Assembly: GCA_009103225.1 (NCBI GenBank)
Contig: RHPI01002699.1
Span: forward strand, 286,578 to 350,577
Origin: Chlorokybus atmophyticus
Taxonomy: Eukaryota > Plantae > Mesostigma and Chlorokybus algae
DNA length: 64,000 nt
Reading direction: 5' to 3'
Positions 22,375 through 58,413 of the stretch are shown here, piece after piece (the first letter of the stretch is position 1; the number at the start of each line of letters is the position of its first letter). A program made the translations under genes and the position numbers. The notes below the pieces were generated by a model. It did no database searches and was not told the origin of the DNA. It saw only the letters and a program-made list of their open reading frames with translations.

Positions 22375-23044
22375 AGCTACTAAGCAGCCGCAACGCTATA
22401 TTTATGTGTTGCACCAGCGTCCATGCGCGAAACGTTGTATCATACATTGGCTTATGTATGTGAGCTGCGTAGAGAGTAGGCTGCGCAGTCAACTTCGCAT
22501 TGACTGGTAGTTTCGTACAGGTGGTAGATTGTGTGCTTGTGTGTGTTTTGGTCCTGACCACCAGCAGCATTAGAATGTGTGCTGATGACCAGTGGTGAGT
22601 TTTGGTAGCTTAGCACAGTACTGTCCCCTGTGGTAAGTATAGGTTCAAGCGCTATTAATCTGTGACCGTGTGGGGGTAGAACTACGGGAGCAAATGCCTG
22701 CGAACAGATGCAATCTCTAGATCGCAAATACCAAAGCACGAAACTACCATGGAATCGCACCTCATCTCAAAGTCCTTGCCTTGCGCATGCAGCTGCTGTA
22801 AAGTTGCGAGGCAATCATGATGGGTAGAGTGGCCTCCTGGTGGGTAGAGAGGCGATGAAAATCACTTGCACTCTGCAACTTCCAAATCCTGGAAAATAGC
22901 CTCGTAGAGGCAGTGCAGTCATAGTCAATTCACCAATATGCTACAACCCAGGACTACTGGGGAATCGTGTATACCGTACATACGCTACATAACCGACAAC
23001 TCAACGAGCTGATAACAAAATCAACAACGCAACAGGCCAAGCCT

Positions 23045-26000
23045 TCAAGTCAATAGATTTTTTAAACTCAACCGCCGCTTGCTGCTGCCAGAAGACACAG
23101 TGCTTTGGCCACTGTCACTGTTGAACAAACTGCTGCGGTGAGTGTTGTCTGGGCTTGGCGCCGCATCCCTAGTAGTCACGCCGCTCTGCGAAACAAACAC
23201 GCTTGGAGCAGTCGATACATGTTGAGCACGTTCGCTCCGCATGCTGCGGCTGATCTTGTTCTTCTTATCAAGCGCTTGTTGCTTGTCGGGTGGCAGCAGC
23301 GAGAAGCACGCCTCGCACAAGCACGTGGACTCTAGGTCGCACTTGCCGGCGGGACCGTGAGGTGAGTAGCGCGTGTGCTCGGGACAGATCACGCCCTGGC
23401 AGCCACCGCAGTAGTGTCTCCTAAATGTCATACGCCAATCCCCGAGCTTGTACCAGCGATCAAAACGTGCACGACAGCCATCAACCTTGCACCTGCCAAC
23501 CACCAGTGTGCAGTGAGTTACTGCCATCCTGGACAACTGCTGGTCACATAGAGGTGAAGCATATTGGAAGACAGCCTGATACCTGTAGCGCATGCGGTCT
23601 GGATCATTCCTTTTGCTGCCTGAGTTTTTGCCATGTCCACCACCGGTTTGCTCATTTCTCTGCACACGCGCATGTCATGACCATGCAGCAAAAGACATTC
23701 CAAGTATCACCTGTGAGAAGAACGCAAGCTGATGCTGCTTACCCTGGACAGCGCGGGTGAGCCTCCTTCATCTTCTGAAGCAGGTGTGCTACCATCTCCA
23801 GTCTACAGGCAAACAACGAGGTCAACTGACGCAACTACTCTTGCAAACGTGCAAAGAGCAACCCCCGGCATACCCGGCGCGCAATGTCAATGTCAGTCGG
23901 ATGCACAAGGCCCATTGCACGCATATTCCTGACCAGCTCAGCCACAACTTCCATCCCATCTGATCTTGTCTGAGGACTGTCTCTTCCGGAACTGCTGCCG
24001 CCGTCTGCGTGCCGGCTCATGTTGATGTCACTGTCAAATGAAACATTGTCAATGGCATACATTTTTGTTGTTGTACTTCGGCTTGCTGTGCTTATTGTCT
24101 GCGCAAGTGTGCCGCTCAGCAACACTGCGCTGGTTATGCCACAGAAGTTTATACCTCAGGACTCGTGTGAGCTCCCTCCTGAGCCTCCTCTCATCCCACT
24201 CATCAACGTCGGTGACTCCCGCCTCAAGCATGGGACTCTCTGATCCCGCACCGCTGTTCAGATCAGGCTGCATTAGCACATGCACGCACACAGATACACC
24301 CTTGCATGCGCACGCATATGCGCACTACCTGCTCTCGTAGCCTGAAGACAGGTGCATTGCATCCCCGGCAGCGTCAACAGAAGTGCCGCTGCTGTCATCC
24401 GTAGGACTGGTCGCCTGGCTGCGCAAAGCTTTCTGCTGCTCCAATAGTATTACCATCTGCGCCATGCACCGCATGGTCGACCAGTGCCGGCTGCGCACCC
24501 CTGCTGATAGGTCAACACCAGCTCAACTTGTGCCAGGCACCCATCATCTACACAAAGGTTACATGAGCTGAACAACCTTCCTATGGGCTGGGCAACAAAC
24601 CTGCTGGCAATGGCATAGGAAGCGGAGGCTTTCCATGAAGACCTGAGAGCCACAAACATTGGGAGTTACAGCACACACACTAGACACACACACACCCTTA
24701 GCCATTATGTTCAAGATGTTGCGCGTTCAGGAAAATTATTGTGATGCCAGCCAGATGTGGCTATCATCGCGTACGCTCACCGCTTGGTTTGTTGTCACTG
24801 GGAGGGCGTGGGGGTCGCGGGTTGGGCGATAGTGGGCTGGAGCGTTGCACCACCTGAAGGTTCGGGTTGGAGCGTGACTTGCTCAGGCCGCGTGCAGCAA
24901 CAGGTGGTTCTGTCGGGGCGATTGCAATGGGCGCAATGGGTGCCGACTTGCTCGACTCATACATGCGGGCTTCAAGACCGTTAGCCATGAGATCAGGAGG
25001 AGGAACAGGAGAAGTTGCAGCAGAAACAAGCTGCTTGGCGGGTGTTTTGTGATACATTGCGTGAGACCATAACCCGTACAGTACAACAGCACCAAGTACT
25101 GCTGATACGACCATGACAGGCAGTGAAGCATTGAAGCTGCTTTTCGAACTGCGTGGCTGAGCTGCAGTTTTGCAGTCTACTGTAGCCGGCTTGCTGTGAC
25201 CATATGCACCCCATGCGGTGACCCTGCCAGGGCATAAACCATCAGCACCTTGACAGACCATGCCATGTCCCCTCCTGTTGAGCGCAACTCACCTGTATGA
25301 GTAGACAGTGTCTGGTTGCAAGTTTCGGTCGAGGTAACCCGTGTCCGTGATTGCTCCATAGAGCTCCCAATACGGGTTGTGCTCTGACCTCCGCCTGATC
25401 TCATACGAATGCACGGGTGGAAAGCCTTCTTGTTCGGGAGGGTCCCACTGCAGTAAACAGGCACCTGAGTCAACGTGTGCAAACACTGCAGTGAAAGGCT
25501 TAGCATAAGAAGCGCGTAACACACCTGCAATGCAACCTTGTCACCATTCACGCTGCACGCCAGTTGCGAGGGCTCACTGGGAGCTGCAGAAAAACAGCTA
25601 TGTTCAATTGCTGCCCTCCAGATTGTGTGTTGTATACATGTGTCGTGCCACGCAGCGCATTTGAAAATAGCGCACCTTTGCCTATCCCAAGCACTTGCAT
25701 CTTGAGAGCACGCAACAGCTGCTCGCGATGAAGGCGTGATGTGACCCCGAGGTCTCGGTCGAGGGCAGCTCCATCCTGCGCAAGCAGCGTCGGGAAGTCC
25801 AACGCTGTAACGGCATTTGCTGCAAATGCTTTAGAGTACTGAGGCAACTTGACCCCGTGTGCAACCCACTCCGCGACTGCATCCGCTGTCAACTTTGCAT
25901 CCCTTCGCGCCTGACCAAGAAGGGAGAGTTGGCATGAATGCCAACTTTGGTACAGTGTGCACAACGTAGCGTGCACATAACTACATGTACTCGTTACACT

Positions 26001-26993
26001 GCATGTGGTACTATGCCACATGCTTACATGCATTCATACATTCTGCCGTGTGTGCACGTCACAGGTGAATGGCTAGTGTTGTGCCTGCAGTGTGCTTGAG
26101 GGTGGTTTGTGGTGAAGCAGTCACCAGGCTAGTAACTAGGATGGTTGACACATACCAAGTGGGACAGAAGCTCTGTTTCAGAGATGGTCAGCCCATGGTT
26201 GACATCGAGGTGGCCAAGTAGCTGTTTAACGCCCTGCTTGATCTCTGCTTCGCTGTCAAAATCCGGCGAGTCGCCCAGCTGCTGGCCCACAAACTCCCGT
26301 GCCTCCTCACTGTCGATCGCACCGTCCAAGTTGCGATCCAACGACCTGAAGAACGCCCTGGCTGCTGCTGTTGCCTCCTTTGCTCCTTCTTCTTTTCCTA
26401 CACGCACAATGCAGTGTAACATGCAAGCCCATGTAACATTGAGCTTACTGTGCACACACCAATTACAAGTTGTATGTCCAGTGCAAGCTGCGGAAGAATG
26501 CGTGTGCAGTTGACTGTCTGCTCCGTCAGCAGCTGCTATGGATATTTTCGCTTGCTTTTGCAAGTAAATCTCATATCAATATCAGCGTCAAGTACCATCA
26601 GTTCCATCACTCATATAGATCTACCAGCCCAAGAGAGAACAATGCACCGTGTCTTTGCATTTTACAGTCAGTTCAATCACCTCTTTCTAAGCACAACTCA
26701 ACACAAACGTAGTTGGCCATTGCTCACTGTCTAACTATGAAGCTTAACACCGCTGTCAAAAACGAGCAACTGATTTGTGAATTACGACGTGGCAGCCCCG
26801 AACAAAGCACACATATGCTCACAAGCAAATCGCATTGAATGAACATGAACGCAAATGCAAGCAGAATGCCAGCACAATCGGTTGAGGCACACGGCCCGCT
26901 TGACTGCTTACCAGCTGCGGGTGCAGTGGCGGCGACCAAACACGACAATGCAAACAGCAGGATAGCAGCCCGCAGCCGGACACGCCACGTCAT
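23045..26993 (-). CDS. Single-pass membrane protein: signal peptide - EF-hand pair - SAM - fibronectin type III - TM - low-complexity linker - FYVE-like Zn finger (STIM-like luminal EF-SAM)
   Basis: Signal peptide MTWRVRLRAAILLFALSCLVAATAPA. EF-hand DRNLDGAIDSEE plus a degenerate second hand DVNHGLTISETE. SAM AVAEWVAHGVKLPQYSKAF..LGVTSRLHREQLLRAL. FN3 APSEP..LQWDPP..LQPDTVYSYRVTAWGAYGHS. TM VMVVSAVLGAVVLYGLW. C-terminal CKVDGC..F..RRHYCGGCQGVICPEH..LCEAC. A phase-compatible GT-AG path joins all parts; the link through 24780-23650 is the least certain. Confidence 0.7.
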
Positions 26994-27319
26994 CTGAGGC
27001 AATGCATGTCCCGCAGAACAATACCGCCACCGCCACCGCCACCGTCGCCGCCCCCTGCCGCTGATCGCCACGTAACAGTGCGGGTTTAGGGCGTCGCAAC
27101 GGGATCACTCAGCCAGTGAGCACCGCAGCGATCATCATATATGATCGTGGGTTCAGTGCTCGAGGATGATCGCGGAATCAATGATAAATTATGATCACTG
27201 TTGATCGCAACCTCAGTGATCATGCTGACAGCGATGAATACAAAGTGATCTTGCCATTGCCTTGTGATCACTTGTGAGCAAGCCTGGTTGAGATTCAAGT
27301 CCCAATCACGTTCAAAGAG

Positions 27320-30300
27320 CATGCGGGAGGCCCTGCTTCGGGAAGTTGTGCTCCGCCCTGGCATTGCCGTGGTCATCGCCACAGGCGCTGTTGGCAAGCC
27401 GCGGCATGGCCTGAGGCACTGCACCCATGCGCAGCAATGGCCAGGCCGGGTAGGATGCCTGCTGAGTTGGTTGCTTGTTTGCGCCGTCGCTTAATGTTCA
27501 GCTTGTTCGGAAAGGAAACTTGATTGCATGTTTGTCAAGCTGGAAGTTGCTTGTTTACTGCATGCTAGCATGATCTTTGCTGTTTGCAGTCACTGTCAGT
27601 GCTTCACAATCAGCCAGTAGCAACAGGCAGTCGTTTCGTGCAATATGCAATTGATGTGTTTGTACAGCAGCACAGACTTTCCAACGTCCAAAGTAGCATA
27701 ATTGAAAATGTTGCATACGCTACCTCGCAAGCTTACTCTGCCAGTGGCTGGTGATGAGCTTCCTGCAACACATTGCTCAGCAGCTGCTTGATAGCTGCTT
27801 TGCTCGCTGCTTCTGCGTAGGGGCCAACAGATGTTTGAGACAGACAAAGCGGGCACCTCCGGTGCAGCAGCGGAGGATGTCCCCTCTCCCAGAGTGGCGC
27901 CTAGACGCCTGCAGGGATCGGCTGCTGCCCAGGTGCTGCGCTGGTTGAGCTGTGCTACACAAACAACAGTCACATTGACAATGTGCGCTACTCTTACACA
28001 GCAGTGCTTGTTCCATGCTTTGCTCACAACAGCTGCAGCTGAGGCTCATGCCACATGTGCACACCTGCTGATCAACAGTTTGCCTGTGCTGCAGCTCACA
28101 ACACCGTCGCATGATCATTCGACGGTGTTGCGAGCTGCAGCACAGCAAGCAAACTGTCGATCAGACTGTTAGTGCTGACGCTCTCAGCCTCGCACTGTTG
28201 AATATGGCTTCTGGCAGTGACTAGGCGTTTTTGTATGCAAGCAACTGCATCGTATGGCAATGCACTAGTTGCAAAACCACACTTGCGTAGAATGGAGAGA
28301 ATTGCAACATTGCAAGTGTGCAACTCTTTACTAGTACTGAAACAGCTTATGAGGCTCTACGGCAGGGTTCTCTCGCGCGCACATACCGCACATTCTTCTT
28401 CGTGTTGGTATGCTTCGGCTCGCTCATCCTGTCGGCAGCACCGGCATTGGCATCAATTGCCGACGTGATGACGACTGGCCTCCTGTACGCGCTGTATTCA
28501 GGGCTTCATTACTCATTCAAGCAATTCACCTTCCAGACAAACATCGCCGATGTCCCGCTGATGTCTGTACTGCGATCGGGCCTCATGTTGCTGTCCTTTT
28601 GCTTCCCCTGTGATCATCACGCCTCTCATCGTCCCTACTTGCTTACTGCCATTGTGTGCTCAGCAGTATCGGCAGGTGCCTTTGTCGTTCTGTCAATCAA
28701 GTGCTGAATTTGTGGTCATACGTCAGCTCATGAACGTATAGATGTTATGTCAGCGTGTCCGGTTTCAATTCGCTTACCCCATCCTTGCGCAGTTTACATC
28801 ATTGTCAAGGCTGCCATGTTTCATTACCACGAGGCAGTCATCATGAGGAGCAAGAAGCTTCACGATTTGCCTACTTGGGTTGCACCTGTGGCTTTTGCAG
28901 TCTCCGCATGTTTGGCGGGGATGCACGTCCTTGTTGCTCATCGCACTGTTGTGGAGTACAAGCGCAGACGTGCTGCTCAGGTACGCTTGCTATCAGCATG
29001 CTCGAGCAAGTGCAGCATAGACATTGTCTTCAAGGTTGCAGCATGCTCATGTATAGTGCATGTCATACAACAACAGAACAAAAGTTAACAATCACATGTT
29101 GTTCTGCTCCTCATGTGCAGTACAACAGTACAAAGTTAACAACCGAATTGTAGTACCCCACCTCATGTTATGGCCTGTGCAGGGTTTGTACAGTTTTGAG
29201 GACTTTGGAAGTGCGCAACCAACATTGCGCCAGCAACCAAGAGGTGGTGCTGAGCGGCAACGATTGTTGCAGCACCAAGAAAGCTTTGGCTATGGTCACT
29301 TGACTCATGATATTGAAAACCAGGTACGCACAAGTTGACCCATTTAGAACACTTCAGCCTGTGACCTGCTCCACTCCATGTGTGTGTGGGTGGGGTTTGG
29401 ATTGAGATTGATAGTAGTACTTGCTTGTGCAGAAGGAGGATGACGACTTGGACGCCACACTGCTCGCCGACTCTGACAGCAAGTTCATCACCGTTGCTGG
29501 CATCCGCTCACTGCACTACAAAGTATGTGGCGACTTGGAGCTTTTCCGACCGCCTGAGACGGTAAGCTGCGCGGGGCTGCAGGCACGTGCGTTGAATGCG
29601 TCACGGGGACTGTGCGTTGACATGTGGTAGTGTTGTGCAGTCAAACACGGCACTCGTTTTGCTTCATGGCTTTGGCGCTGGCGTGTTTGCGTTCAGGCAC
29701 ATTATGGGTTCACTAGCTCAGCACTTGAGGTTAGTTAACACACACAGCATCCAGTTAACCCAGCAGACTTGGTCGTTGTTTTGTCAGATTTCTGCTGCGA
29801 TTGATCGCAGCAATTGGCTTGATCAAGGTTAGCTGCTGCAAACACTACCTCCAATGTATGCGCGGTCTGTGCGCTCAGAAGCTAATTGCTGTGTTAGGTG
29901 CAAAGTTGTGGCTTTTGACCGGCCGGGCTTTGGTTTGACATTTCGACCGCATCGCTCTGATTTTACCAACTCTGAAAGCCCGTACTCTTTTCACGCACAG
30001 GTATGACGATATTGTATACCAATGAACTTATGGTCAAACACAATTCCCTCGCTCATTGCATGACAGTGGCTTGCAACCCTGCAGGTTCACCTTACGCTTG
30101 AGCTCTGTGCAGCCCTTGGTTTGCATCGCGTGGTTCTGGTTGGCCACGCGGATGGCGCCTTGCTTGCATTGATGACAGCTGCTGCAGCAAGTGACAGCCA
30201 GTTCCAGGTGCGACAAGCGTCTGCATGTACATGAGTACTTATATCTCAAACTGTATATTTAGTAACCCTGTTGGGAGCAACGCCATCAGCCTTGTGTGTC

Positions 30301-47350: not shown

Positions 47351-48785
47351 GATTATGACATAAGAGTGTAAGATTGCCCTATGTACGCATTCTCGATGTG
47401 TGATTGTATCTATGTGTCATGTAGCAGTGTGCGTGGTTTTGCACATGCTACTTGTGCTTGTGTCTTGTATAAATTTCATTTCATGAACTTAACACTAGCA
47501 TACGTTTGGACGGCGTTCAAACATAAACCCCATAAGCAATGCTGACGCAACATTTTCCTGTATAATAAAACATACCATTAATAAAGTATCATCATGCATT
47601 ACCATATATACAACACACTATAACATCATTAGAACATACCATTAATAAGGTATCGTCATGCATTAGTATATGCCGCATTGCATACATGCGGCGGTTTTTG
47701 CGGATGCTGTTGCTTGAGATCAGCACACTTGATTCATTGCATTATAAGATTTCACTCACAGTGCAATTTAAATCATGAGATGATTGTATATATTAAAAGT
47801 TCATGATTTTGCCGTTGTTAATGATTGCGTAACTTTATATAACTACATGCATTTTATAACAGCGCTTATTAAGTTTAAAATTTTATATCGCTTGTATGTC
47901 GCGTAATTTATAAAAACAGTTTAAATAGAATAGTGTAGTGTAAATAAAGACTTAAAAGCGAGTCTGCGGCTGAAGTACCACTGTAGATGCATATTATCGG
48001 TTGAATGGTTATATAACTTATTTGAATGAAATGTAGCGTATGAACTCGATATTATAATTAATGATCTACGTTAATACAAATTGTACGGGTTCTCGTTCAT
48101 ACTTGTATTTTCTATGTGGATTGCATCCCATTAAGGTATAGCAAGTTAACATATGACTCGTGGTTGTAAATGTCATCATTTATTAATACATATACAGCAT
48201 TTGTGGTTTGTGGTTTGCAATTTTAAACACAGTCACAAACGCTTCGGTTTGCTTTATATTATCTTGTTAATATGTGTGATGTGTTTGAGCTGTGGCATTC
48301 ATATGCAAGTACTTGATGTTAAGGTATCATGTTTTTTTATATGTTTATCATTATTTATGCTGCCGCAATTTGCAGTATGCAAGCGTTGAACAGCATGCCC
48401 GTACATCAACTTTATATTTCGCAAATATCTAAATATCATCTTAAGTCCCATATGATGTCGCACATGTGGCAGCATACCATGTATATACAGGTGTATGTGG
48501 GTATATAAAGTTGTATATTATTGGCAATGTAATCCATAAAAGGCACATTGTTTTGCAAAAGATTGCAATGGATATTGCAATATGTTGCATGTACATTATT
48601 GCACATATTTTAATTCATTGTTTAAATAGGTTGCAATCAACGAAACAAGTACATTTACACGTTGCTTGGTAAACTATTGCATTATTCATGTTCGTAACCA
48701 ATTGTTGCATGTGCACCTTATCGCAGTATCATTATTTCATTCACAATATATGCATATATATGAGCTCGAGCGCTCACATGCACGC

Positions 48786-49311
48786 TGTAACAGCACCACC
48801 GTCGCCGGTGATGCCCCTTCAATCCTCTACCCCAACACCCACACCGCCTATGACAAGCCTTTCAACGGCGTGGCCGCCACTGAGCAGAGAACTGAAAGTC
48901 CCCACATCAGATTGATGTGACCTTTTATATCAAGAGTATATCAACTATATAACTCTCGATAATTAACTCACAACTAGACATCGACCCTACAGATAGGGTA
49001 GTTAGGAAATCTAGCGTGAGCCAATCACAGCTCAGATAAGGTACCTATCGATAAGGTACTTATCCAAAGATACCTATCGTAAGGTACCTAACGAGATAGT
49101 GATCACATTATATCAAATGTGACACTAAATAGGCTTGAATAAGCGGTTCTACACCCATTGGGACTTATTTAAGCTATGATAAAGCATCATAGCCTTTAAT
49201 AAGCGAGGAACCGTAGAAAAGAGGTATAAATAAGCATATTTAAATACTTATTCATACAAAATGTGTTATTCAGGTAGCAATAATACCCCTATTATTATTG
49301 CTCCCGTTACA
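48786..49311 (-). repeat. 3' LTR (526 bp)
   Basis: Matches 61594-62119 except for 2 transitions found by eye. Confidence 0.97.
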
Positions 49312-49320
49312 TTCCCCCCC
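49312..49320 (-). other. Polypurine tract (GGGGGGGAA) abutting the 3' LTR
   Basis: Plus-strand TTCCCCCCC directly after the LTR end. Confidence 0.85.
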
Positions 49321-49449
49321 ACTTAGGTTTTCAACGTCCTCGTTGAACTCAAGTTGATCNGGCTTGATTTCGAGTAATTGTAACCACTTAGGTTTTCAAC
49401 GTCCTCGTTGAACTCAAGTTGATCAGGCTTGATTTTGAGTAATTGTAAC
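49320..49449. repeat. 65-bp tandem duplication between integrase and PPT
   Basis: CACTTAGGTTTTCAACGTCCTCGTTGAACTCAAGTTGATC.. occurs twice (starts 49320 and 49385). The first copy has an N at 49360. Confidence 0.8.
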
Positions 49450-49523
49450 AAGTGAGATAGCAGGAAATGACAGGGTGGTAATGAAACTGCACTGCCAGTC
49501 TGTCATAAAACCAAGCCCACAGT

Positions 49524-52500
49524 TTATGGGACAGGACATGAATCCCAATAAGCTCGAAGCAACTCGCGGCAGTGCGCAAGATGCCTGTCGGGCTCCCAAC
49601 TGTTATGTTCCGGGCCATACCCTTTCCATTTCACCAAATAGCGAGTTGCGCGTCCTCGACCATTTAGCTTATGGTTCAATATAGCTTCCACCTCGTATTC
49701 GAGCTCGCTGTCCACCTCAACTGGCGGTGGTGGAGGCTGTGTTCTACCGTCTGAGCGGTAAGGTTTCAACAAGTTTACATGAAACACGTTGTGTATACGC
49801 ACACTTGGGGGCAATTGCAGTCGATAAGCGTGCGTACCAACTCTATCAGTGATAGAGAAAGGACCTAACCATCGGGGCAGCAACTTGCGAGCACCCGTAC
49901 CTTTGATGGTTAAGTTTTTTGCATTAAGCAAAACTTTATCGCCGACATCGAAAGTGGCCATTTTTCGATGTGTATCAGCATAAGCTTTTTGCCTGTCCTG
50001 TGCTTCTGACAGACACAGCTTGGCTCGAGCCAAATTTTCTTGCATATTAGTGGCAAATTCCTTTGCCGCTGGCACAGTCAGGGCATTGCGAGGTACACGC
50101 AATGACGCTGGTGTGTTTGGGCGAATCCCATAATTTAAGAAAAATGGGGTTTCCTTTACACTTTCTTGCCACGCGTTGTTCACAGCGAACTCTGCCATTG
50201 GCAAGTACCTGTCCCAATCAGCATGATTAGGAGCCACATAGTGGCGAAGCATTTCTTCCAGTATTTGATTTGCTCGCTCAGTTTGACCGTCCGTTTGCGG
50301 GTGGAAAGCAGTCGACATGCTTTGTTTTACCCCCAACAATTCACAGACTTCTCGCCAAAACTTGGAGACAAAACGAGGATCACGATCTGTGACAAGTTCA
50401 CGCGGTATACCGTGAACGCGAAAGACCGTGGACACAAATAAGTGTGCCAAGTCCCGTGCACTTACAGTTGTGCAACACGGGGCAAAATGCACCATTTTAG
50501 TCAAACGGTCGACAAAAACCACAATAGCAGTGTATTTAGCTGCTGTTTCAGGTAGGTCAGTAATCAAATCCATACTGACACTATCCCACTTTTGTTCTGG
50601 AATTGCTAATGGTTTAAGCAATCCCGCTTGTTTTTGTCGTAGTGGCTTATTACGTTGACACACGTCACATGTGCGAACGTATTGATCCACGTCAGCTGAC
50701 ATTGACGGCCACCAGTATAACTGTTGCGCAGATTTGAGTGTTTTGTGTTTCCCCAAATGCCCAGCATACGGCGGGTCATGCACTGAATGTAAGCATTGCT
50801 TACGCAAGTCGCCCGAGTTGGGAATTGCCAACTGCTCCCCTTTATACCACAGATTGCTAACAGCAGTAAGCTGTTGCAAGTTGGTTTGACTGCTAAACCA
50901 ATCATCTGAGTTATAACCTGTGGACACTTCCTTTAAGAAAGGATCTTCAGGCTGTTGTACATTACGCGTACTTCGAGAGCGCGTAAGTGCCAAAAGAGCA
51001 GGGCTGCGACTTAGTGGATCCGCCACATTGGTGCGACCCGGACGGTATTGCCAAGTGAAAGTGAAACGAGAAATGAATTCATTCCACCTAGCTTGCCGCC
51101 TCGACAGATTTTGTTGCGTATGAAAGAATGTGAGCGGGTTGTGATCAGTAATCACTGAAAACTCCACCCCTTCCAAGTAGCAACGCCATGTGCGCAGCGC
51201 GTGCACCACCCCGAGCAATTCCTGCTCAGTGGTTGTGTAATTACGTTCAGCAGGAATGAACTTTCTGCTTTCATATGCACATGGTCTGTCATCTTGTAGA
51301 AGGACTGCTCCACACCCAATGGTGGAAGCATCACTGATCACCACAAAAGGCTTGGTGTGGTCGGGGAAGGCTAACACAGGGGCTTGTGTTAATGCATCTT
51401 TAATGCGTGTAAAAGCAACCTCGTGTGCCTCCGTCCACACAAATTTAACATCTTTTCTTAGTAAAGATGTTAAAGAATTTGCCATGCCAGAATATGCTCA
51501 CATGAACTTGCGGAAATAATTGGCTAGCCCCAAAAAAGCACGTAACTGATGTACATCCTTGGGTGGCGGCCAATCCTTTACCGCACACACCTTTTGAGGA
51601 TCTGATTTCAATCCTTCTTTGCCAATCACATGCCCTAAAAAGGGTAGTTCATCCTTTGCAAAGTTGCATTTGGACAGGTTGGCATAGAATTTGTGTTCGC
51701 GTAACTTAGCTAGAACCAATTCCACATGCCTGTGGTGGTCCTCCCGGGTTTTGCTGAACACAATAATGTCGTCTAGATATACCAGTACAAACTTGTACAA
51801 TTCATCAGCAAATACCGCGTTCATTGCTGTCTGAAATGTAGCCGGTGCATTTGTTAACCCAAATGGTAACACTTTATACTCAAAGTGTCCTAGTGGGGTG
51901 CGAAATGCAGTTTTTTGTATATCCGACGGGTGGATTTTGATTTGATGATAACCACTGGTCAAATCCAGCGTGCTGAACACTGTTGCACCTGACAGCTTAT
52001 CAAACAAATCATCAATCCGAGGCAAAGGGTATCTGTTTTTCACAGTGACCTTGTTCAACGCACGGTAATCAATACACATGCGTAGCTTGCCATTCTTTTT
52101 GGGCACAAACAAAATTGGTGCACCAAAAGGAGATATGCTCTTTGTTATTAAACCTTTGTCCAATAACTCTTTGAGCTGTTTTTCCATCTCCGCGTGTTCT
52201 AAGGGACTTAGCCTGTATATAGGCCGCCAAGGTGGCTTTGCCCCCTCCTCTAACGGAATGGTATGATGTATGTTTCGATCGGGAGGCAACTCTGGGAGTT
52301 CATCCTGAAATACATCTGCGTATTGTTCCGTAAGTGACTGCACCACAGGGTCACTGATAGCCTGTTCAGCAGGTGTTTCCACCTGTCGTAAGTGCAGTAA
52401 GTATACTTCCTCACGTTTACGCATGCAACGTTTCAGTTGCATAGCAGAGAGGAGCGGAACATTATCGCGTGGTATACGTGCGAGTACAGATGCTGTTAAA

Positions 52501-52621
52501 GTCATCCTACGTTTCCCTTTACGAAGGGTGCACTTATTGACTCGAGAGTCTGATTGTAAACCTGCTTCAGTGTGCCATTGTTCCCCTAAAACAACATCCA
52601 CCCCGGGGATGCCCTGTAGTA
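49524..52621 (-). pseudogene. pol: pol: end of protease, RT, RNase H, integrase, chromodomain; one in-frame TGA at 51500-51498
   Basis: RT LRMCIDYRALNK and YLDDIIVFS. RNase H SDAS..ELLG..TDHNPL..ADPLSR. Integrase HHCC plus D,D,E and GPF. Chromodomain YEVEAIL..YLVKWKGYGPEHNSWEP. ORFs 52712-51498 and 51485-49524 are in the same frame (KFM*AYSGMANSLT). Confidence 0.95.
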
Positions 52622-52682
52622 AAGTGCTGCCAGGCAGCAGTGCAGCGCCGGGTGAAATCTTTAAGAGATGTGTAAATATGTA

Positions 52683-52755
52683 TGGGTACGACAGGACTCG
52701 AACCTGTGACAACTCGGTTAAAAGCCGAATGCTCTACCAACTGAGCTACATACCC
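52683..52755 (-). tRNA. trnK: Mitochondrial-type tRNA-Lys(UUU), within the NUMT
   Basis: GGGTATGTAGCTCAGTTGGTAGAGCATTCGGCTTTTAACCGAGTTGTCACAGGTTCGAGTCCTGTCGTACCCA forms a full cloverleaf with anticodon TTT. Confidence 0.95.
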
Positions 52756-53422
52756 AATGTAAAAGTTACTCCTTTCTTAGAAAAAGATATTAGATAATTG
52801 TTAGATTAATTGCTCTCTACCTTAGGTAATCGATTTGGATTCTAAAGTAATCGAAATCTATTAAGGCGCAGTGCGGAACAGCCGGTAAATTACTAATATA
52901 TTTCGATTCGGGTGATTGCTGCAGAAGATTACCCCCGCTGGACTGGGCTGCTGCAGACTGAGCTGGGCTGCTGAATCGATTCCTGCAGGCAGCCCGCTTA
53001 TGCGAGAAATCGATTACTGCAGCCCGCATCCATCCATCCTTAGATTACCCTATAATCCAACCGATTACCCCCTAATCAATAGATTATCTCGCTGCGCACC
53101 TGCAACTTGCCGATCGTTTTCGTGGTAATCCTACCACGCTGCAGTTGGTAGCTTCCTATTGTGACCATGCTTTAGAGTAAAGTAGAGTAAAATAGCAAAT
53201 TATACCATTACTGCACTTTACTAGACTGCCCTAAGCTGCAGCAGGCCGCACTTCAGCCATAAGGTTCGGGATAATCTTTTTTACGAGAGATTTTTCCTCT
53301 CTTTAGCTGAGTACCATCTTTTATGCGCGAGGCGCAGTGCGGAAACACTTAACTGTGCAATACAATTGTGTTTGGTAACCTTTATTTTCTATTAAATAAC
53401 TTAGTAATAAAAGCTCACTTTC

Positions 53423-53494
53423 TTGGAGTAAAAGGATTCGAACCTTTGCATGGCGGTATCAAAAACCGATGCCTTTCCGCTTGGCTATACTCCA
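53423..53494 (-). tRNA. trnQ: Mitochondrial-type tRNA-Gln(UUG), within the NUMT
   Basis: TGGAGTATAGCCAAGCGGAAAGGCATCGGTTTTTGATACCGCCATGCAAAGGTTCGAATCCTTTTACTCCAA, closely resembling plant mitochondrial trnQ. Confidence 0.93.
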
Positions 53495-53640
53495 ACTTTT
53501 CAGTGTTTTAAATATATAATGCTGTACTGCAGCCGCTGCAGGTAATCGTCCGATTAGAGAGCCAGATTAGATAGATAAATTACGCCGATCGAAGCCTGCC
53601 TTGCCAATTGTGCCAATCAATAGATTACCTTTACTGCTGC

Positions 53641-53686
53641 TAAGGTATTTTAATATTAAGGTATTTTAATATTAAGGTATTTTAAC
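53641..53686. repeat. 16-bp tandem repeat (TAAGGTATTTTAATAT, about 2.7 copies) in the NUMT
   Basis: Read directly from the sequence. Confidence 0.8.
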
Positions 53687-54479
53687 TTTATTTTGTTGGT
53701 TTTTAGGGGGAATTGAATTGCAGGCTGCAGTTAGGCGGGTGGTGATGCAGGGGGTAATCTACCGCACTGCGCCTACCATTTTCTGTTTCTGGTAGTTTCC
53801 TGTGTTTTATTCATAAGCACTGCACTACATTTCACTCTATTCGACCCTTTGTCCACATTAATCACAAACTTTGGTGCAACTTAGTTCGTCTACCGCCGAA
53901 ATACACTGGATGCACCGGACTTGATCGGGATATATTGCACTGGGCTAGGCCGGGCTGTACTAGACTAGACTAAATCTAACTAGAACAAACTAAATAAAAT
54001 TGCACCATTTACTGGATTGAGCTAGGCTGGGTTCCACTGCAACTGCACTGATCTGCCATATGAGAAATTGGTCTTCTACATCGACCCAGAGAAATCTGAT
54101 TGGTCATTTGATCAGTAATCTAAACAATGATCTTTGATAGAGAGTAATCTAATGATTAAAAGGGAAGCCGGCCGCACTGCGCCTGTAGCTCCTGGACTGC
54201 ATAGACTGCATAAAACGTTGAACTACTGCTGATCTTCTAGAGAGAGCAATCTAAGGATTGCTCTTTCTCCAAAATATCAGCTGAGCAAATTACCCTAATC
54301 ACTTAGATTACCGAGTGCAGCAGCCCAGTTTAGTCTAGGTGCGCAGCCAGTCGATGGCCAGATTATAGAGATAGATTAGAGATAAATTACGACAGATGGG
54401 GCGCAGTGTCCACCTAAGATAAATTACAGCAAAGAACCGAGTACTGCAGTGCTCTTCTTTTAATTTATTAATGATCCTC

Positions 54480-56093
54480 TCAGCATTGTAAAGCAAAGTA
54501 GAGTGCAGATTGGCCGCNAAAGACTAAGGGGAGTAATTTTACATAATGTGGTACGCCAAATTCAGATTCTAAGAATAGAAGATTTTTCGGTGTTTTTAAA
54601 AGAGCTGCCCCCCAGAAATCGGTTCCTAAACCAACCATCATATCTTTAGCTAAATACCCAACAAAGACACTACCAAAACCTAATAAGATTAGAGGTATAG
54701 CCATAATAATAGGAGCATCATGAGCATCTCGAACATTTTGGCGTATTCCATTATAAGGAGCTAAAAAGGTTAAAAAAAGTAATCGGAAGGAATAATAAGA
54801 GGTAAATATTACTGATACACTTCCTAACCAAAAGGCAAATCTTCCACTTATACTATATTTAGCAAAAGCAAGTTCTAAGATAAGATCTTTAGAATAGAAT
54901 CCGGTTAAGAATGGAAATCCGACTAAAGAAAGGGATCCTATTAACATCATAGTGTAAGTAAAAGGAAGTATTTGTCTTAAACCTCCCATTTTCCGCATAT
55001 CTTGTTCATCTGACATACCATGAATTACAGAGCCCGCCGTTAAAAAGAGCAAGGCTTTAAAAAATGCATGATTCATTAAATGAAAGATACTAACAGAATA
55101 GTTAGATAAGCCAGAAGCAAAAACCATGTAACCTAATTGACTACAGGTAGAATAAGCTATTACGCGTTTTAAATCATTTTGCATTACTCCAGTAGTTGCT
55201 GCAAAAAATGCAGTTAGAGCTCCCATTACAGTTACAACCACTAAAGCTAAGGGGGCATACTCAAATAAAGGGGATGATCTAGCTATCATAAATACCCCAG
55301 CAGTCACCATTGTTGCTGCGTGTATTAATGCAGACACCGGCGTTGGTCCTTCCATAGCATCTGGTAACCAAGTATGCAATCCAATCTGCGCAGATTTACC
55401 GATTGCACCTACAAATAATAGTAAACATATTGTATTAAATGCGTTTACTTCCATATTGCAAAATATAAATTTTGCTTGGTGTAAATGACCTGCTAAAGCA
55501 AAAAGAGTGGTGAAGTCCACTGTACGAAAAAGGAAGAATAATCCCATAATACCAAGAGCTAATCCAAAGTCTCCCACTCTATTTACAAGCATTGCCTTTA
55601 TTGCAGCATTATTTGCTGCTTCTCGTGTAAACCAAAAGTTAATTAAAAGATATGATGCTAATCCTACTCCTTCCCAACCAAAAAACATCTGAATAAAGTT
55701 ATCTCCGGTTACGAGGGTTAACATAAAGAATGTAAATAATGAAAGGTAGGACATAAATCGAGGTTGATGCGGATCTTCAGACATGTAAGAAATCGAATAC
55801 AAATGTACTAAGGTACTTACAAAGGTTACAACAATTAACATAACTACGGTAAGAGTATCAAAAAGAAACCCCCAAGAAGCATCAAATAGCTCAGAATCAA
55901 TCCAAGGAGCTAATTTTATATAACACGGACTTCCGGATAATGCCACCTCATAGAACGCAACAAAAGAAAAGATAGCGGATAAGGCTACACAAGTGGTTGT
56001 TATTAGTGCAGCTCCTCGATAACCGATAAATCGACCAAATAAACCAGCCAGACCACTTCCTAGCAATGGCAGAAAAACAAGTAATAAATACAT
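54480..56093 (-). pseudogene. nad5: Mitochondrial NADH dehydrogenase subunit 5, 3'-truncated (homology ends near the N at 54518)
   Basis: [13 protein letters not shown].., [48 protein letters not shown]. Open for about 525 codons in the standard code; the C-terminal part of a normal nad5 (about 670 aa) is missing. Confidence 0.95.
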
Positions 56094-56848
56094 AAGTTAT
56101 TTGCTTTTTATTTTCTCTTAATTACAATATTGTGGTTGCAGCGATCGCTGTTCAGGTCTGCTTCTTTTATTAAAACAAATCACACACGGGCTCAGTGCTG
56201 CTGCCTGTTTATCTTCGCTACAGTACAGGTAACTTAAGTTTTACCATCAACTACTGAATCAGCGCAGCAACAACGCAGCTGCGCACCTATGCAGGCGCAG
56301 TGCGGTAGATAACCCTCCTGCAGCCCAGCCCACGCAGTAAAGTAAAGTGACCGTGCTGTCTAATAAAAGTAGGATGCAGTCTGTTTCCAGACGCCAGAGC
56401 GAAGTTATTAAAATTGCATTCTCTTACCAATATGACCTACATCGAAAGGTGGCCCACTTGAGTTTAGGTGATCTAATTAAAAAGATTTATAAATTTCACC
56501 ATTTCTAAAAAGAATTTGAGAGTTACAATTCCATCTACACACTAGGTAGTAATCGTGTTAGAAAATAGATTTGATTAAAACCTCAATAAAGTAAAGCGCA
56601 ATGCTCACTCTCTTATTGTTCAGTAAAGCAGGTGCAGTTGATGGTGCAGTATGATGGGCCTTGCTTTACCTGGCAGTGCAGTGCTGTCAACATATTTTAT
56701 CGGTACACGCTGCATCTGGTAGCTTCCTAAACTTTATAGTTTCTAATGAGTTACAAAAGTGTAAAGATGTATAGCCGCTGCGGTGTTACTAGTAACTGAG
56801 CTATTTTTAGACTTGGCGTATTTGAAACCTTTCATAAATAGATTGCTT

Positions 56849-56921
56849 GAGCCGTATGCTTGGAAACAAGCACGTACGGTTCTGAGGGGGGGAAAGCTTG
56901 AAAAGGCCGACCTATCCCAAC
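56849..56921 (+). ncRNA. Group II intron 3' end (domains V-VI), within the NUMT
   Basis: GAGCCGTATGC-TTGGAAACAA-GCACGTACGGTTC (DV), then GAGGGGGG..CCTATCCCAAC (DVI ending in AC). Confidence 0.9.
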
Positions 56922-56963
56922 ACATACAGTTTTGTATCATGGGTTCGAATCCCATTTCCTCCG
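56922..56963 (+). tRNA. trnS: 3' exon of mitochondrial trnS(GCU) (intron after position 43); 5' exon not found
   Basis: ACATACAGTTTTGTATCATGGGTTCGAATCCCATTTCCTCCG corresponds to plant mitochondrial trnS(GCU) from position 44 onward and starts exactly at the intron 3' splice site. Confidence 0.8.
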
Positions 56964-57225
56964 CTTCCTAGTTTAATAGATTTCCTTTTTCGAGTTTACC
57001 TCTTGCTTAAAAGAGAGTACAGCCGCGTGACAGCACTTCTTGCAAAAGTCTTAGATACCTGTATTTACTGCAGAAGTTGCAGCGGCCGGTTTTTACCCGA
57101 GCTGCAGGAACTATAACTATACGCGCTGCAATACAGCAGCAGCAGCACTCCATTAAATAAAAGGGGGGTGTACCGGCGGCAGTGCAGTTCAGTAAGGTAC
57201 TGTCAGATCTACAATACTAAGGTGG

Positions 57226-57305
57226 TGCAGTGCAGTGCAGTGCAGTGCAGCCCAGTCCAGTCCAGTCCAGTCCAGTCCAGTGCAGCCCAGTGCAGCCCAG
57301 TGCAG
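57226..57305. repeat. Pentanucleotide arrays (GTGCA/GTCCA/GCCCA)n in the NUMT intergenic DNA
   Basis: Read directly from the sequence. An (AGCAA)n array is also present near 58022-58045. Confidence 0.75.
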
Positions 57306-58413
57306 CCGTGCAAAGATGCAAAGGTCCAATTTAATGTAATCGAGCTCCAGTCTAATGCAGCCTGTAGCAGCGCAATTTAGTTTGAGCTAGGTCAGTGTCT
57401 CCCGCAGTACAGTCCAGTCCTACCTTGCCATGAGCCTGGGTACAGTCCAGTGCAGCGCTTATCTGTGCTAGAGAGTAATCTAAGGCGCAGTGCGGATTAA
57501 GTAAGAGCAAACTAAGACTTTCTGATCTCAGTAGGCGGTAGGCGGTTGGGATACCAAGTTGCTGGTATGGTCTAGGCTGCTGCATGCAGACTGCTGCAGG
57601 CTGCTGCATGCAGTCCAGGCTGCTGCATCCATGCAGGCTGGATGCAAACCAGTGTACCAGCTAACGATTGAAAGCGAAGCCGATTGGGTTAGTAGCCGAT
57701 TTGGCAGCATAAAAANTTATATCTAACTCATCTTGACAAACTAGACCATTTATTCTTTTTATATTTCTAGAATAATAAAACATTATAACCACTTATAAGC
57801 TATTCTGTTCTTTTAACTAAACTGACTTACTATTAATGACCTTAAAAATCACAAATCCCTCTCACGCTGCAGCTGGTAGCTTCCTTGAAAAAGAGTTACC
57901 AGGAGCTGGTAAAAGCTTATGGGTAGTAAGATCTTTCTCTTTTTAAATGCACGAAAATGCAGAGAAAGATCTACTTTTATTGAGTTTTTACACTCTTTTA
58001 CTTTACAGCGTTACAAAGTTAAGCAAAGCAAAGCAAAGCAAAGCAACGGTCTCCTACCACTTTCTGGTAGCTTCCTGTATACTCGTGAAAATAGGTGAAT
58101 TAGAGAAATGAAATTGACTCCTCTTTATCAGGTAAACAGCTTACCGTTAGGGGGTGCCTCATATAACCCACACCTTATTAAACTGCAGCTTAAGAGATGA
58201 CTCTAACCTAAACCAGCTTTTAACTAACTCTTTAGAGTCTATTACAAAAAAGGATATTGACTGTTCTAACTTGTAAAGGGATTATGTCTTTTATTTCTTA
58301 CCAAGATCGGCCAACTGCAACAAGAGAATACTAGACCGCACTGCGCCTCTCTATTTGCTTTTTTTGCTGACTTGACTATACCGCTCTTTCAGCTGTGTAN
58401 AGTCTATGTAGTA

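Follow-up and report, generated by a model that had tools for sequence, protein, structure and literature searches.

The gene described here lies on the minus strand of a 64,000-nucleotide window of the genome of Chlorokybus atmophyticus, an early-branching streptophyte alga (assembly GCA_009103225.1, contig RHPI01002699.1, positions 286,578 to 350,577), and all coordinates given below are those of the window. It is a single expressed gene of 13 exons with a 2274-nt coding sequence (CDS; 26993-23045), and its 757-residue product comprises, in order, a signal peptide, an EF-hand pair, a SAM domain, a fibronectin type III (FN3) domain, one transmembrane helix, a Ser/Pro-rich linker of ~300 residues and a zinc finger. 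Judged by sequence comparison and by predicted fold, the EF-hand pair and the SAM domain together form a genuine STIM-type module (EF-SAM), which resembles STIM more than it does generic EF-hand or SAM proteins. The green lineage, given as STIM-free in reviews up to 2025, has a conserved, expressed, membrane-anchored family that contains the sensor half of STIM. Our preferred and, on balance, probable reading is that the protein is a type I membrane protein in which a STIM-type EF-SAM Ca2+ switch is joined to a different cytosolic output. It has the sensor of STIM and not the transducer, and is not to be filed as a STIM orthologue.

The EF-SAM module and STIM

When residues 28-188 are compared by phmmer with all sequences of the Protein Data Bank (PDB), STIM2 comes first (E = 1.3e-6) and STIM1 second (E = 3.8e-5), and both alignments run end to end, from the canonical Ca2+ loop to the last SAM helix (query residues 7-153). 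The SAM exon by itself, searched against the same sequences, ranks STIM2, STIM1 and C. elegans STIM second to fourth among 19 matches, with STIM2 giving the best single stretch. The EF-hand exon by itself leads to ordinary EF-hand proteins, STIM not being found among its top 60 PDB matches. The STIM signal comes from the SAM domain and from both halves taken together. A profile of the family's own EF-SAM (alignment A1, 71 non-redundant family modules) matches the EF-SAM of STIM2 in one stretch covering profile positions 8-155 (60.8 bits, E = 1.5e-15). By summed score calmodulins stand above STIM2 in this comparison, but they do so by adding three partial EF-pair stretches; no single calmodulin stretch exceeds 37 bits, and among all chains STIM2 alone has both sub-domains matched in a single stretch. 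STIM and the Chlorokybus SAM domain also have a W...LPQY...F and HR...L signature in common in these alignments.

The predicted structure leads to the same proteins. An AlphaFold2 (AF2) model of EF-SAM on the 71-module alignment has a predicted local distance difference test score (pLDDT) of 95 and a predicted template-modelling score (pTM) of 0.88. Its top Foldseek match in the PDB is C. elegans STIM (6PW7), with a template-modelling score (TM-score) of 0.78 and a root-mean-square deviation of 2.6 over 161 columns; STIM2 (2L5Y, TM-score 0.67/0.71) and STIM1 (2K60, 0.62/0.66) follow, and all others stay at or below 0.47. No PDB structure other than these three of STIM EF-SAM matches the model over its full length. 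VIA-align gives Z scores of 17.7, 12.8 and 11.2 to the three STIM structures, with 141-150 residues aligned, and Z scores no higher than 11.8, over about 70-99 residues, to ordinary EF-hand proteins. The nearest clusters in the ESM Atlas are oomycete EF-hand/SAM/fn3 proteins, together with arthropod and chordate STIM at TM-scores of 0.76-0.77.

The EF-hand pair (residues ~40-106) is encoded by exon 2 (26156-26397, residues 28-108), where it is recognized through sub-cut-off Pfam matches and through its alignment with STIM1 and STIM2. EF-hand_7, for example, matches the Chlorokybus protein with 24.5 bits (E = 3.6e-5), under the cut-off of 30; relatives exceed that cut-off. The first loop, D48-R-N-L-D-G-A-I-D-S-E-E59 (26338-26303; DRNLDGAIDSEE), aligns to the canonical loop of STIM1/2 and is itself a canonical 12-residue EF loop: positions 1, 3, 5 and 12 hold ligands, and position 6 is Gly. 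Among the 71 members of the profile, Asp is present at position 1 in 64, Asp or Asn at position 3 in 65, Asp at position 5 in 64, Gly at position 6 in 70 and Glu at position 12 in 70. The second loop, D92-E103 (26206-26171; DVNHGLTISETE), is degenerate, having Gly at position 5 and Leu at position 6. The SAM domain (residues 116-186) is encoded by exon 3 (25676-25910, residues 109-186) and is above the Pfam cut-offs of both SAM_1 (PF00536, 25.4-30.6 bits, cut-off 23) and SAM_2 (PF07647, 22.7-28.7 bits, cut-off 20.5); the W...LPQY...F signature and an LHR...R helix lie within it.

Gene, transcript and domains

The gene model rests on public RNA contigs placed on positions 22400-27400, exons 1-6 having first been built by eye from GT-AG sites. 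Contigs from two independent studies (X1 record 2, 2380 nt; X2 record 3, 2549 nt) match the gene region with zero mismatches and skip the identical 12 intervals, each of them GT..AG on the minus strand. Intron-free contigs cannot derive from genomic DNA, so both contigs are transcripts. They join the EF-SAM half and the zinc-finger half in one RNA, which rules out a reading of the locus as two genes. The transcribed unit (22823-27013, as defined by X2, with the same joints in X1) has 13 exons, 12 GT-AG introns and 5' and 3' untranslated regions (UTRs). From high to low coordinates, exons 1-4 are 26993-26912, 26397-26156, 25910-25676 and 25583-25525; exons 5-8 are 25447-25293, 25223-24781, 24642-24601 and 24503-24329; and exons 9-13 are 24253-24155, 24030-23874, 23802-23743, 23659-23583 and 23492-23045. 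Translation starts at the ATG at 26993 and stops at the TGA at 23047-23045. The protein of the spliced model is identical to a 757-residue entry, P0001, retrieved by exhaustive HMMER search with the SAM exon (eukprot jgi/Chlat1/3589/Chrsp234S03579).

A first-pass annotation, made from the sequence alone, had given exactly these bounds for the CDS and had supposed a single transcript, which the contigs of the two studies now span across all 13 exons. Its proposed splice path was correct to within a few bases, except that it missed the last intron (23582-23493). This intron of 90 nt is in frame and stop-free, and is hidden within a continuous open reading frame (ORF; 23045-23665); it is removed in the RNA contigs. 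If retained, it would add 30 residues directly ahead of the zinc finger; the contigs show the spliced form only. At the other end of the gene, ~33 nt of further 5' leader lie within a (GGC/GGT)n repeat (27014-27059, minus strand), and the 5' UTR holds an upstream ORF of 5 codons (ATG 27007, TGA 26992-26990) whose frame differs from that of the main ATG, which it overlaps.

Exon 1 (26912-26993) supplies the start codon and a signal-peptide-like N-terminus (residues 1-27; MTWRVRLRAAILLFALSCLVAATAPAAG) that shows a hydrophobic h-region and, ahead of the predicted cleavage site, small residues. The FN3 domain (residues 189-272; exons 4, 5 and the start of 6, 25181-25583) is above the Pfam cut-off (fn3, PF00041, 28.7 bits, cut-off 25, residues 189-270). 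Cys196 and Cys275, which flank it, are conserved in a 24-sequence full-length alignment; this suggests a disulfide formed in an oxidising compartment, and the Cys pair and an N-X-S site would fit an extracytosolic location. A hydropathy scan locates the single transmembrane helix at L292-W310 (25067-25123), followed by His and Lys in keeping with the positive-inside rule. The signal peptide and transmembrane helix were called by hydrophobicity, hydropathy and eye only; by this heuristic, the hydrophobic N-terminus and the one helix with positive residues after it make the protein a type I single-pass protein. The cytosolic linker (residues 311-608; the rest of exon 6 and exons 7-12, 23583-25066) is disordered, rich in Ser, Pro, Ala, Arg and Gly and poorly conserved, and the 24-sequence alignment contains no conserved block between the transmembrane helix and the finger. 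At a threshold as loose as E <= 5, neither SOAR/CAD (PF16533) nor a STIM coiled coil is matched, whether in the Chlorokybus protein or among six relatives. A Ser-rich C-terminal tail (residues 691-757, 23045-23248, from the CDS translation) ends in KRRLSLKNLLT and the stop codon.

The zinc finger (residues 610-675) and a helix that follows it (together residues 610-690, 23249-23491) are delimited by invariant alignment columns. Twelve positions are invariant in 26 non-redundant copies (C610, C615, H635, C637, C640, C645, H648, T649, H654, C660, C666 and C668), and C671 is nearly so (23 of 24 in the full-length alignment). The family consensus is RCxxxGCxxRFDRW...KHYCxxCQxxYCxKHTRISPHGxxGxCGLESxCxCxxCF...LExxNKL. 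Pfam FYVE (PF01363) scores 14.7-16.4 bits in the Chlorokybus finger, below its cut-off of 27.8, and reaches 26.4-27.4 bits in P0003 and P0006, both of them distant relatives. The nearest folds of an AF2 model of the finger (pLDDT 81) are FYVE and FYVE-related, and the matches are weak (Foldseek E 0.16-0.5, TM-score 0.4-0.59, Z <= 4.4); among them are true FYVE domains and, on the FYVE-related side, the Rab-effector fingers of melanophilin, RIM, rabphilin and Rubicon. As for the motifs of phosphatidylinositol 3-phosphate (PI3P) binding, RRHYCG is present in the Chlorokybus protein, WxxD and RVC are not, and the basic RRHHCR is not conserved in the family; classical PI3P binding is therefore unlikely. 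Identification of the finger as a true FYVE domain and PI3P binder was rejected on the sub-cut-off Pfam scores, the missing motifs and the weak fold matches. The N-terminal C-x4-C...H resembles a C2H2 knuckle and matches GLI, YY1 and WT1 at E values from 5e-4 to 5e-3; a C2H2 reading of the first Cys pair was also set aside, the match being confined to that knuckle. By its sequence, the finger is FYVE-related and specific to this protein family. Another lipid, or a protein such as a small GTPase, is equally open as its partner.

The first-pass annotation had proposed the order of signal peptide, canonical and hidden EF-hand, SAM domain and transmembrane helix, and had likened this arrangement to animal STIM. 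The Pfam SAM scores, the two loops and the hydropathy scan bear out the order, and phmmer, profile, Foldseek and VIA-align comparisons bear out the likeness. The FN3 domain that it placed ahead of the transmembrane helix is recognized by Pfam; the cytosolic CAD coiled coil that it found lacking is not matched; and its FYVE-like RRHYC finger without WxxD and RVC agrees with the sequence, the family consensus and the weak FYVE folds.

Elsewhere in the window, a separate 1656-nt contig (record 1 of X1) ends at 22675, ~150-300 nt past the 3' end of the gene, and is probably a convergent neighbouring transcript. G+C content falls from ~0.52 to 0.38-0.46 at 48000-58000, which coincides with a retrotransposon and a mitochondrial insertion recorded in the first-pass annotation.

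Distribution of the family

Searched exhaustively by HMMER, the SAM exon yields 314 proteins at E <= 1e-3, of which 125 are at E <= 1e-10. Among 189 proteins that were fetched, EF-SAM is present as one unit in 183, FN3 in 112 and the finger in 83. Word-index protein searches with the Chlorokybus protein and with the 24-sequence alignment found only the query and unrelated bacterial FN3 proteins, and are uninformative on relatives. The streptophyte algal members come from Mesostigma, Spirogloea and Closterium; the moss members from Physcomitrium (two genes), Ceratodon and Sphagnum; the lycophyte members from Selaginella and Diphasiastrum; and the gymnosperm members from Ginkgo (two genes). Chlorophyte members occur in Micromonas, Pycnococcus, Pseudoscourfieldia, Picocystis, Pyramimonas, Tetraselmis and Pedinophyceae, and further in Bryopsis, Ostreobium, Symbiochloris, Gonium, Edaphochlamys and Polytomella. 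Outside the green lineage, members were found in a diatom (Proboscia) and in a haptophyte (Pavlovales, with two EF-SAM modules), and the nearest ESM Atlas neighbour of the Chlorokybus protein is a 70-member oomycete cluster of EF-hand/SAM/fn3 architecture (565 residues, automatically named 'Calmodulin'). The whole architecture is present in chlorophytes, streptophyte algae, mosses, lycophytes and Ginkgo, and its EF-SAM-FN3 part in the diatom, the haptophyte and oomycetes. Physcomitrium LOC112280430, Selaginella LOC9637430, Micromonas XP_002502942, Gonium KXZ44899 and Ginkgo Gb_13753, for instance, share the architecture with the Chlorokybus protein at 24-53% identity per domain. The family is thus wider than the first-pass annotation assumed, and the frame in which that annotation set the gene, that land plants lack STIM, needs amending: mosses, lycophytes and Ginkgo all have members.

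A quick maximum-likelihood tree (IQ-TREE) mirrors the Viridiplantae species tree, with chlorophytes, Zygnematophyceae plus embryophytes (support 100), mosses (99) and a gymnosperm group (100); inheritance within Viridiplantae therefore looks vertical. One further protein, P0098, adjoins Ginkgo by both similarity and tree. A gymnosperm-like query reached Ginkgo, lycophytes (Selaginella, 39% identity), mosses and Spirogloea (36%) and found no angiosperm protein, nor was a large angiosperm cluster seen among sampled ESM Atlas cluster names; absence from angiosperms rests on this one word-based search and these sampled names, not on an exhaustive profile scan.

Two variations on the architecture were observed. 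Tandem double EF-SAM modules precede the transmembrane helix in P0002-P0011, P0021, P0024, P0044 and P0060, which include the Pavlovales haptophyte protein and many marine metagenome proteins; some of these relatives have extra FN3 domains and a finger nearly at the Pfam FYVE cut-off. Many chlorophyte members carry, after the finger, a basic amphipathic C-terminal motif, W(R/K)....K..A...F(R/K)..G (alignment A2, columns ~1310-1345), which could be a membrane- or calmodulin-binding helix. The Chlorokybus protein, unlike these chlorophyte relatives, is without it; from the algal and non-seed-plant members it otherwise differs in nothing of functional importance.

Database names for family members are 'hypothetical', 'uncharacterized', 'EF-hand/SAM domain-containing' and the automatic 'Calmodulin', and a literature search found no paper on the family or on the gene identifiers of its members. 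A survey of oomycetes mentions a Phytophthora 'STIM-1 homolog' with only a SAM motif in common, and dismisses it (PMC4820453); that protein may be a member of the present family.

Function and comparison with known systems

How the protein might work can be sketched by analogy with STIM. Ca2+ bound at D48-E59 would hold EF-SAM compact; a drop of Ca2+ on the extracytosolic side, whether the lumen of the endoplasmic reticulum (ER) or the exterior, would loosen EF-SAM and allow it to self-associate. Self-association would cluster the cytosolic zinc fingers and make them bind more avidly to a partner, be it a membrane or a protein.

Several points weigh against this proposal. The Pfam EF-hand_STIM1 model (PF25578) scores 18.2-19.9 bits (E = 8e-4) in the Chlorokybus protein, below its cut-off of 32.2; it is found at E <= 0.01 in 12 of the 71 profile members, at best with 1.4e-5. 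In about half of the family's members the second EF loop has a canonical look, unlike the hidden hand of STIM. An FN3 domain of about 85 residues separates SAM domain and transmembrane helix, whereas in STIM the one leads directly to the other. By the sequence searches the CC1/SOAR machinery is absent, which would leave the transduction step without precedent. For all members of the family, Ca2+ binding, oligomerisation governed by Ca2+, the compartment and the finger's partner are inferred by analogy. Lastly, FN3 domains are characteristic of proteins at the cell surface; the sensor may therefore point to the cell exterior and not to the ER lumen.

Two other readings are about as likely as each other, and each is improbable. 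In one, the protein would be the functional STIM counterpart for plant and algal Orai, that is, an ER store sensor that moves to junctions between ER and plasma membrane and gates Orai through its finger or tail. Stated for the family as a whole, and with the same low expectation, this would make it the missing luminal Ca2+ sensor that partners Orai: EF-SAM would be ancient, animal STIM a derivative that gained CC1/SOAR, and the family would have been lost jointly with Orai toward angiosperms. Reviews do describe Orai without STIM in green algae and in early and other non-angiosperm plants, where another sensor is required (PMC11085791, PMC8318260, PMC11894410); for the Orai channels that green algae, mosses, lycophytes and gymnosperms retain, they give no known activator. 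The range of the family in the green lineage, chlorophytes to Ginkgo, matches the published range of Orai, which persists 'as far as gymnosperms' (PMC11894410), and the family has a diatom member, diatoms being among the possessors of Orai (PMC11085791). This match of ranges is a qualitative one; the same loss in angiosperms is seen for many genes that are tied to flagellate stages and comparable traits, and the absence of the family from angiosperms has the narrow basis noted above. The element that is missing from the Chlorokybus protein and six relatives, SOAR/CAD, is to our knowledge the only one known to gate Orai. Moreover, oomycetes, with their large EF-SAM-FN3 cluster, are reported to lack Orai (PMC4820453, PMC9694693), and published surveys give them as without STIM as well.

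In the other reading, the protein would be receptor-like and not a store sensor: located at the plasma membrane or in endomembranes, it would use EF-SAM-FN3 to read external, vacuolar or Golgi Ca2+, or for Ca2+-dependent adhesion, and its FYVE-related finger would recruit trafficking factors such as a Rab GTPase. An FN3 domain flanked by a conserved Cys pair is typical of secreted and surface proteins, and the occurrence of the family in oomycetes, reported to be without Orai, also favours this reading. The finger is likewise in keeping with such a role, Rab-effector fingers (melanophilin, RIM, rabphilin and Rubicon) being among its weak fold neighbours and the PI3P motifs not being conserved. 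The C-terminus shows no evident ER-retention motif, but STIM1, too, is not known to carry a classical KDEL or KKXX signal. Against a receptor stands the fact that all EF-SAM modules characterised so far are ER-luminal store sensors, to which the similarity is end to end.

A chance pairing of a generic EF-hand pair with a generic SAM domain, or a merger of two genes, is essentially excluded: the EF-hand exon that finds no STIM among its top 60 PDB matches, the sub-cut-off EF-hand_STIM1 score and the calmodulins that lead by summed score would suit it, but the calmodulin rank is a sum of three partial stretches where STIM2 is matched in one, phmmer puts STIM2 and STIM1 first, only the STIM EF-SAM structures match at full length, the SAM signature is shared, and the RNA contigs of two studies join all exons.

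The preferred reading, a STIM-type Ca2+ switch with its own cytosolic output, has three consequences. The origin of STIM has been placed near the base of animals (PMC7016017); with members in diatoms, haptophytes and oomycetes as well as in the green lineage, the EF-SAM sensor would originate far below animals. Research on Ca2+ in plants and algae gains a concrete candidate sensor for Ca2+ in stores or outside the cell, and the questions of whether plants have store-operated Ca2+ entry and what gates plant Orai become testable in existing model species. Even if there is no link to Orai, a zinc finger in place of a coiled-coil channel activator would be a new output for the EF-SAM switch; should the pairing with Orai prove true, store-operated Ca2+ entry would be an ancestral eukaryotic mechanism.

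Among known systems, the closest is STIM of animals and choanoflagellates (STIM1, STIM2, C. elegans STIM-1), which likewise has a signal peptide and is a type I single-pass protein. In both, a canonical EF-hand and the second hand paired with it precede a SAM domain; for the Chlorokybus protein the three are predicted to form one globule like that of STIM (TM-scores 0.62-0.78, Z 11-18) at an identity of about 21-23% between the EF-SAM modules. The Ca2+ loop aligns to the D76-E87 loop of STIM, the SAM signature W...(V/L)xLPQY...F and the final HR..L..L helix are common to both, and a Ser/Pro-rich region is found on the cytosolic side of each. They differ in the FN3 domain that stands between SAM domain and transmembrane helix in the Chlorokybus protein, in the two tandem EF-SAM modules of some of its relatives, and in the cytosolic part: CC1, SOAR/CAD and a clear polybasic tail are absent, and a zinc finger with 12 Cys/His takes their place. 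That finger is in turn to be compared with FYVE domains (EEA1, Vps27/Hrs, endofin) and FYVE-related domains (rabphilin, melanophilin, RIM, Rubicon), with which it shares the cross-brace-like spacing ...H(Y/F)C-x2-C-x4-C-x2-H...C-x-C-x2-C(F/Y). In contrast with FYVE domains, the family finger is without WxxD and RVC, has R(R/K)HHCR reduced to (K/R)H(Y/F)C, and has His for Cys at one or more sites. Its first ligand pair, a C-x4-C that resembles a C2H2 knuckle, stands 19-22 residues upstream, and its 12 conserved ligands would possibly serve three Zn.

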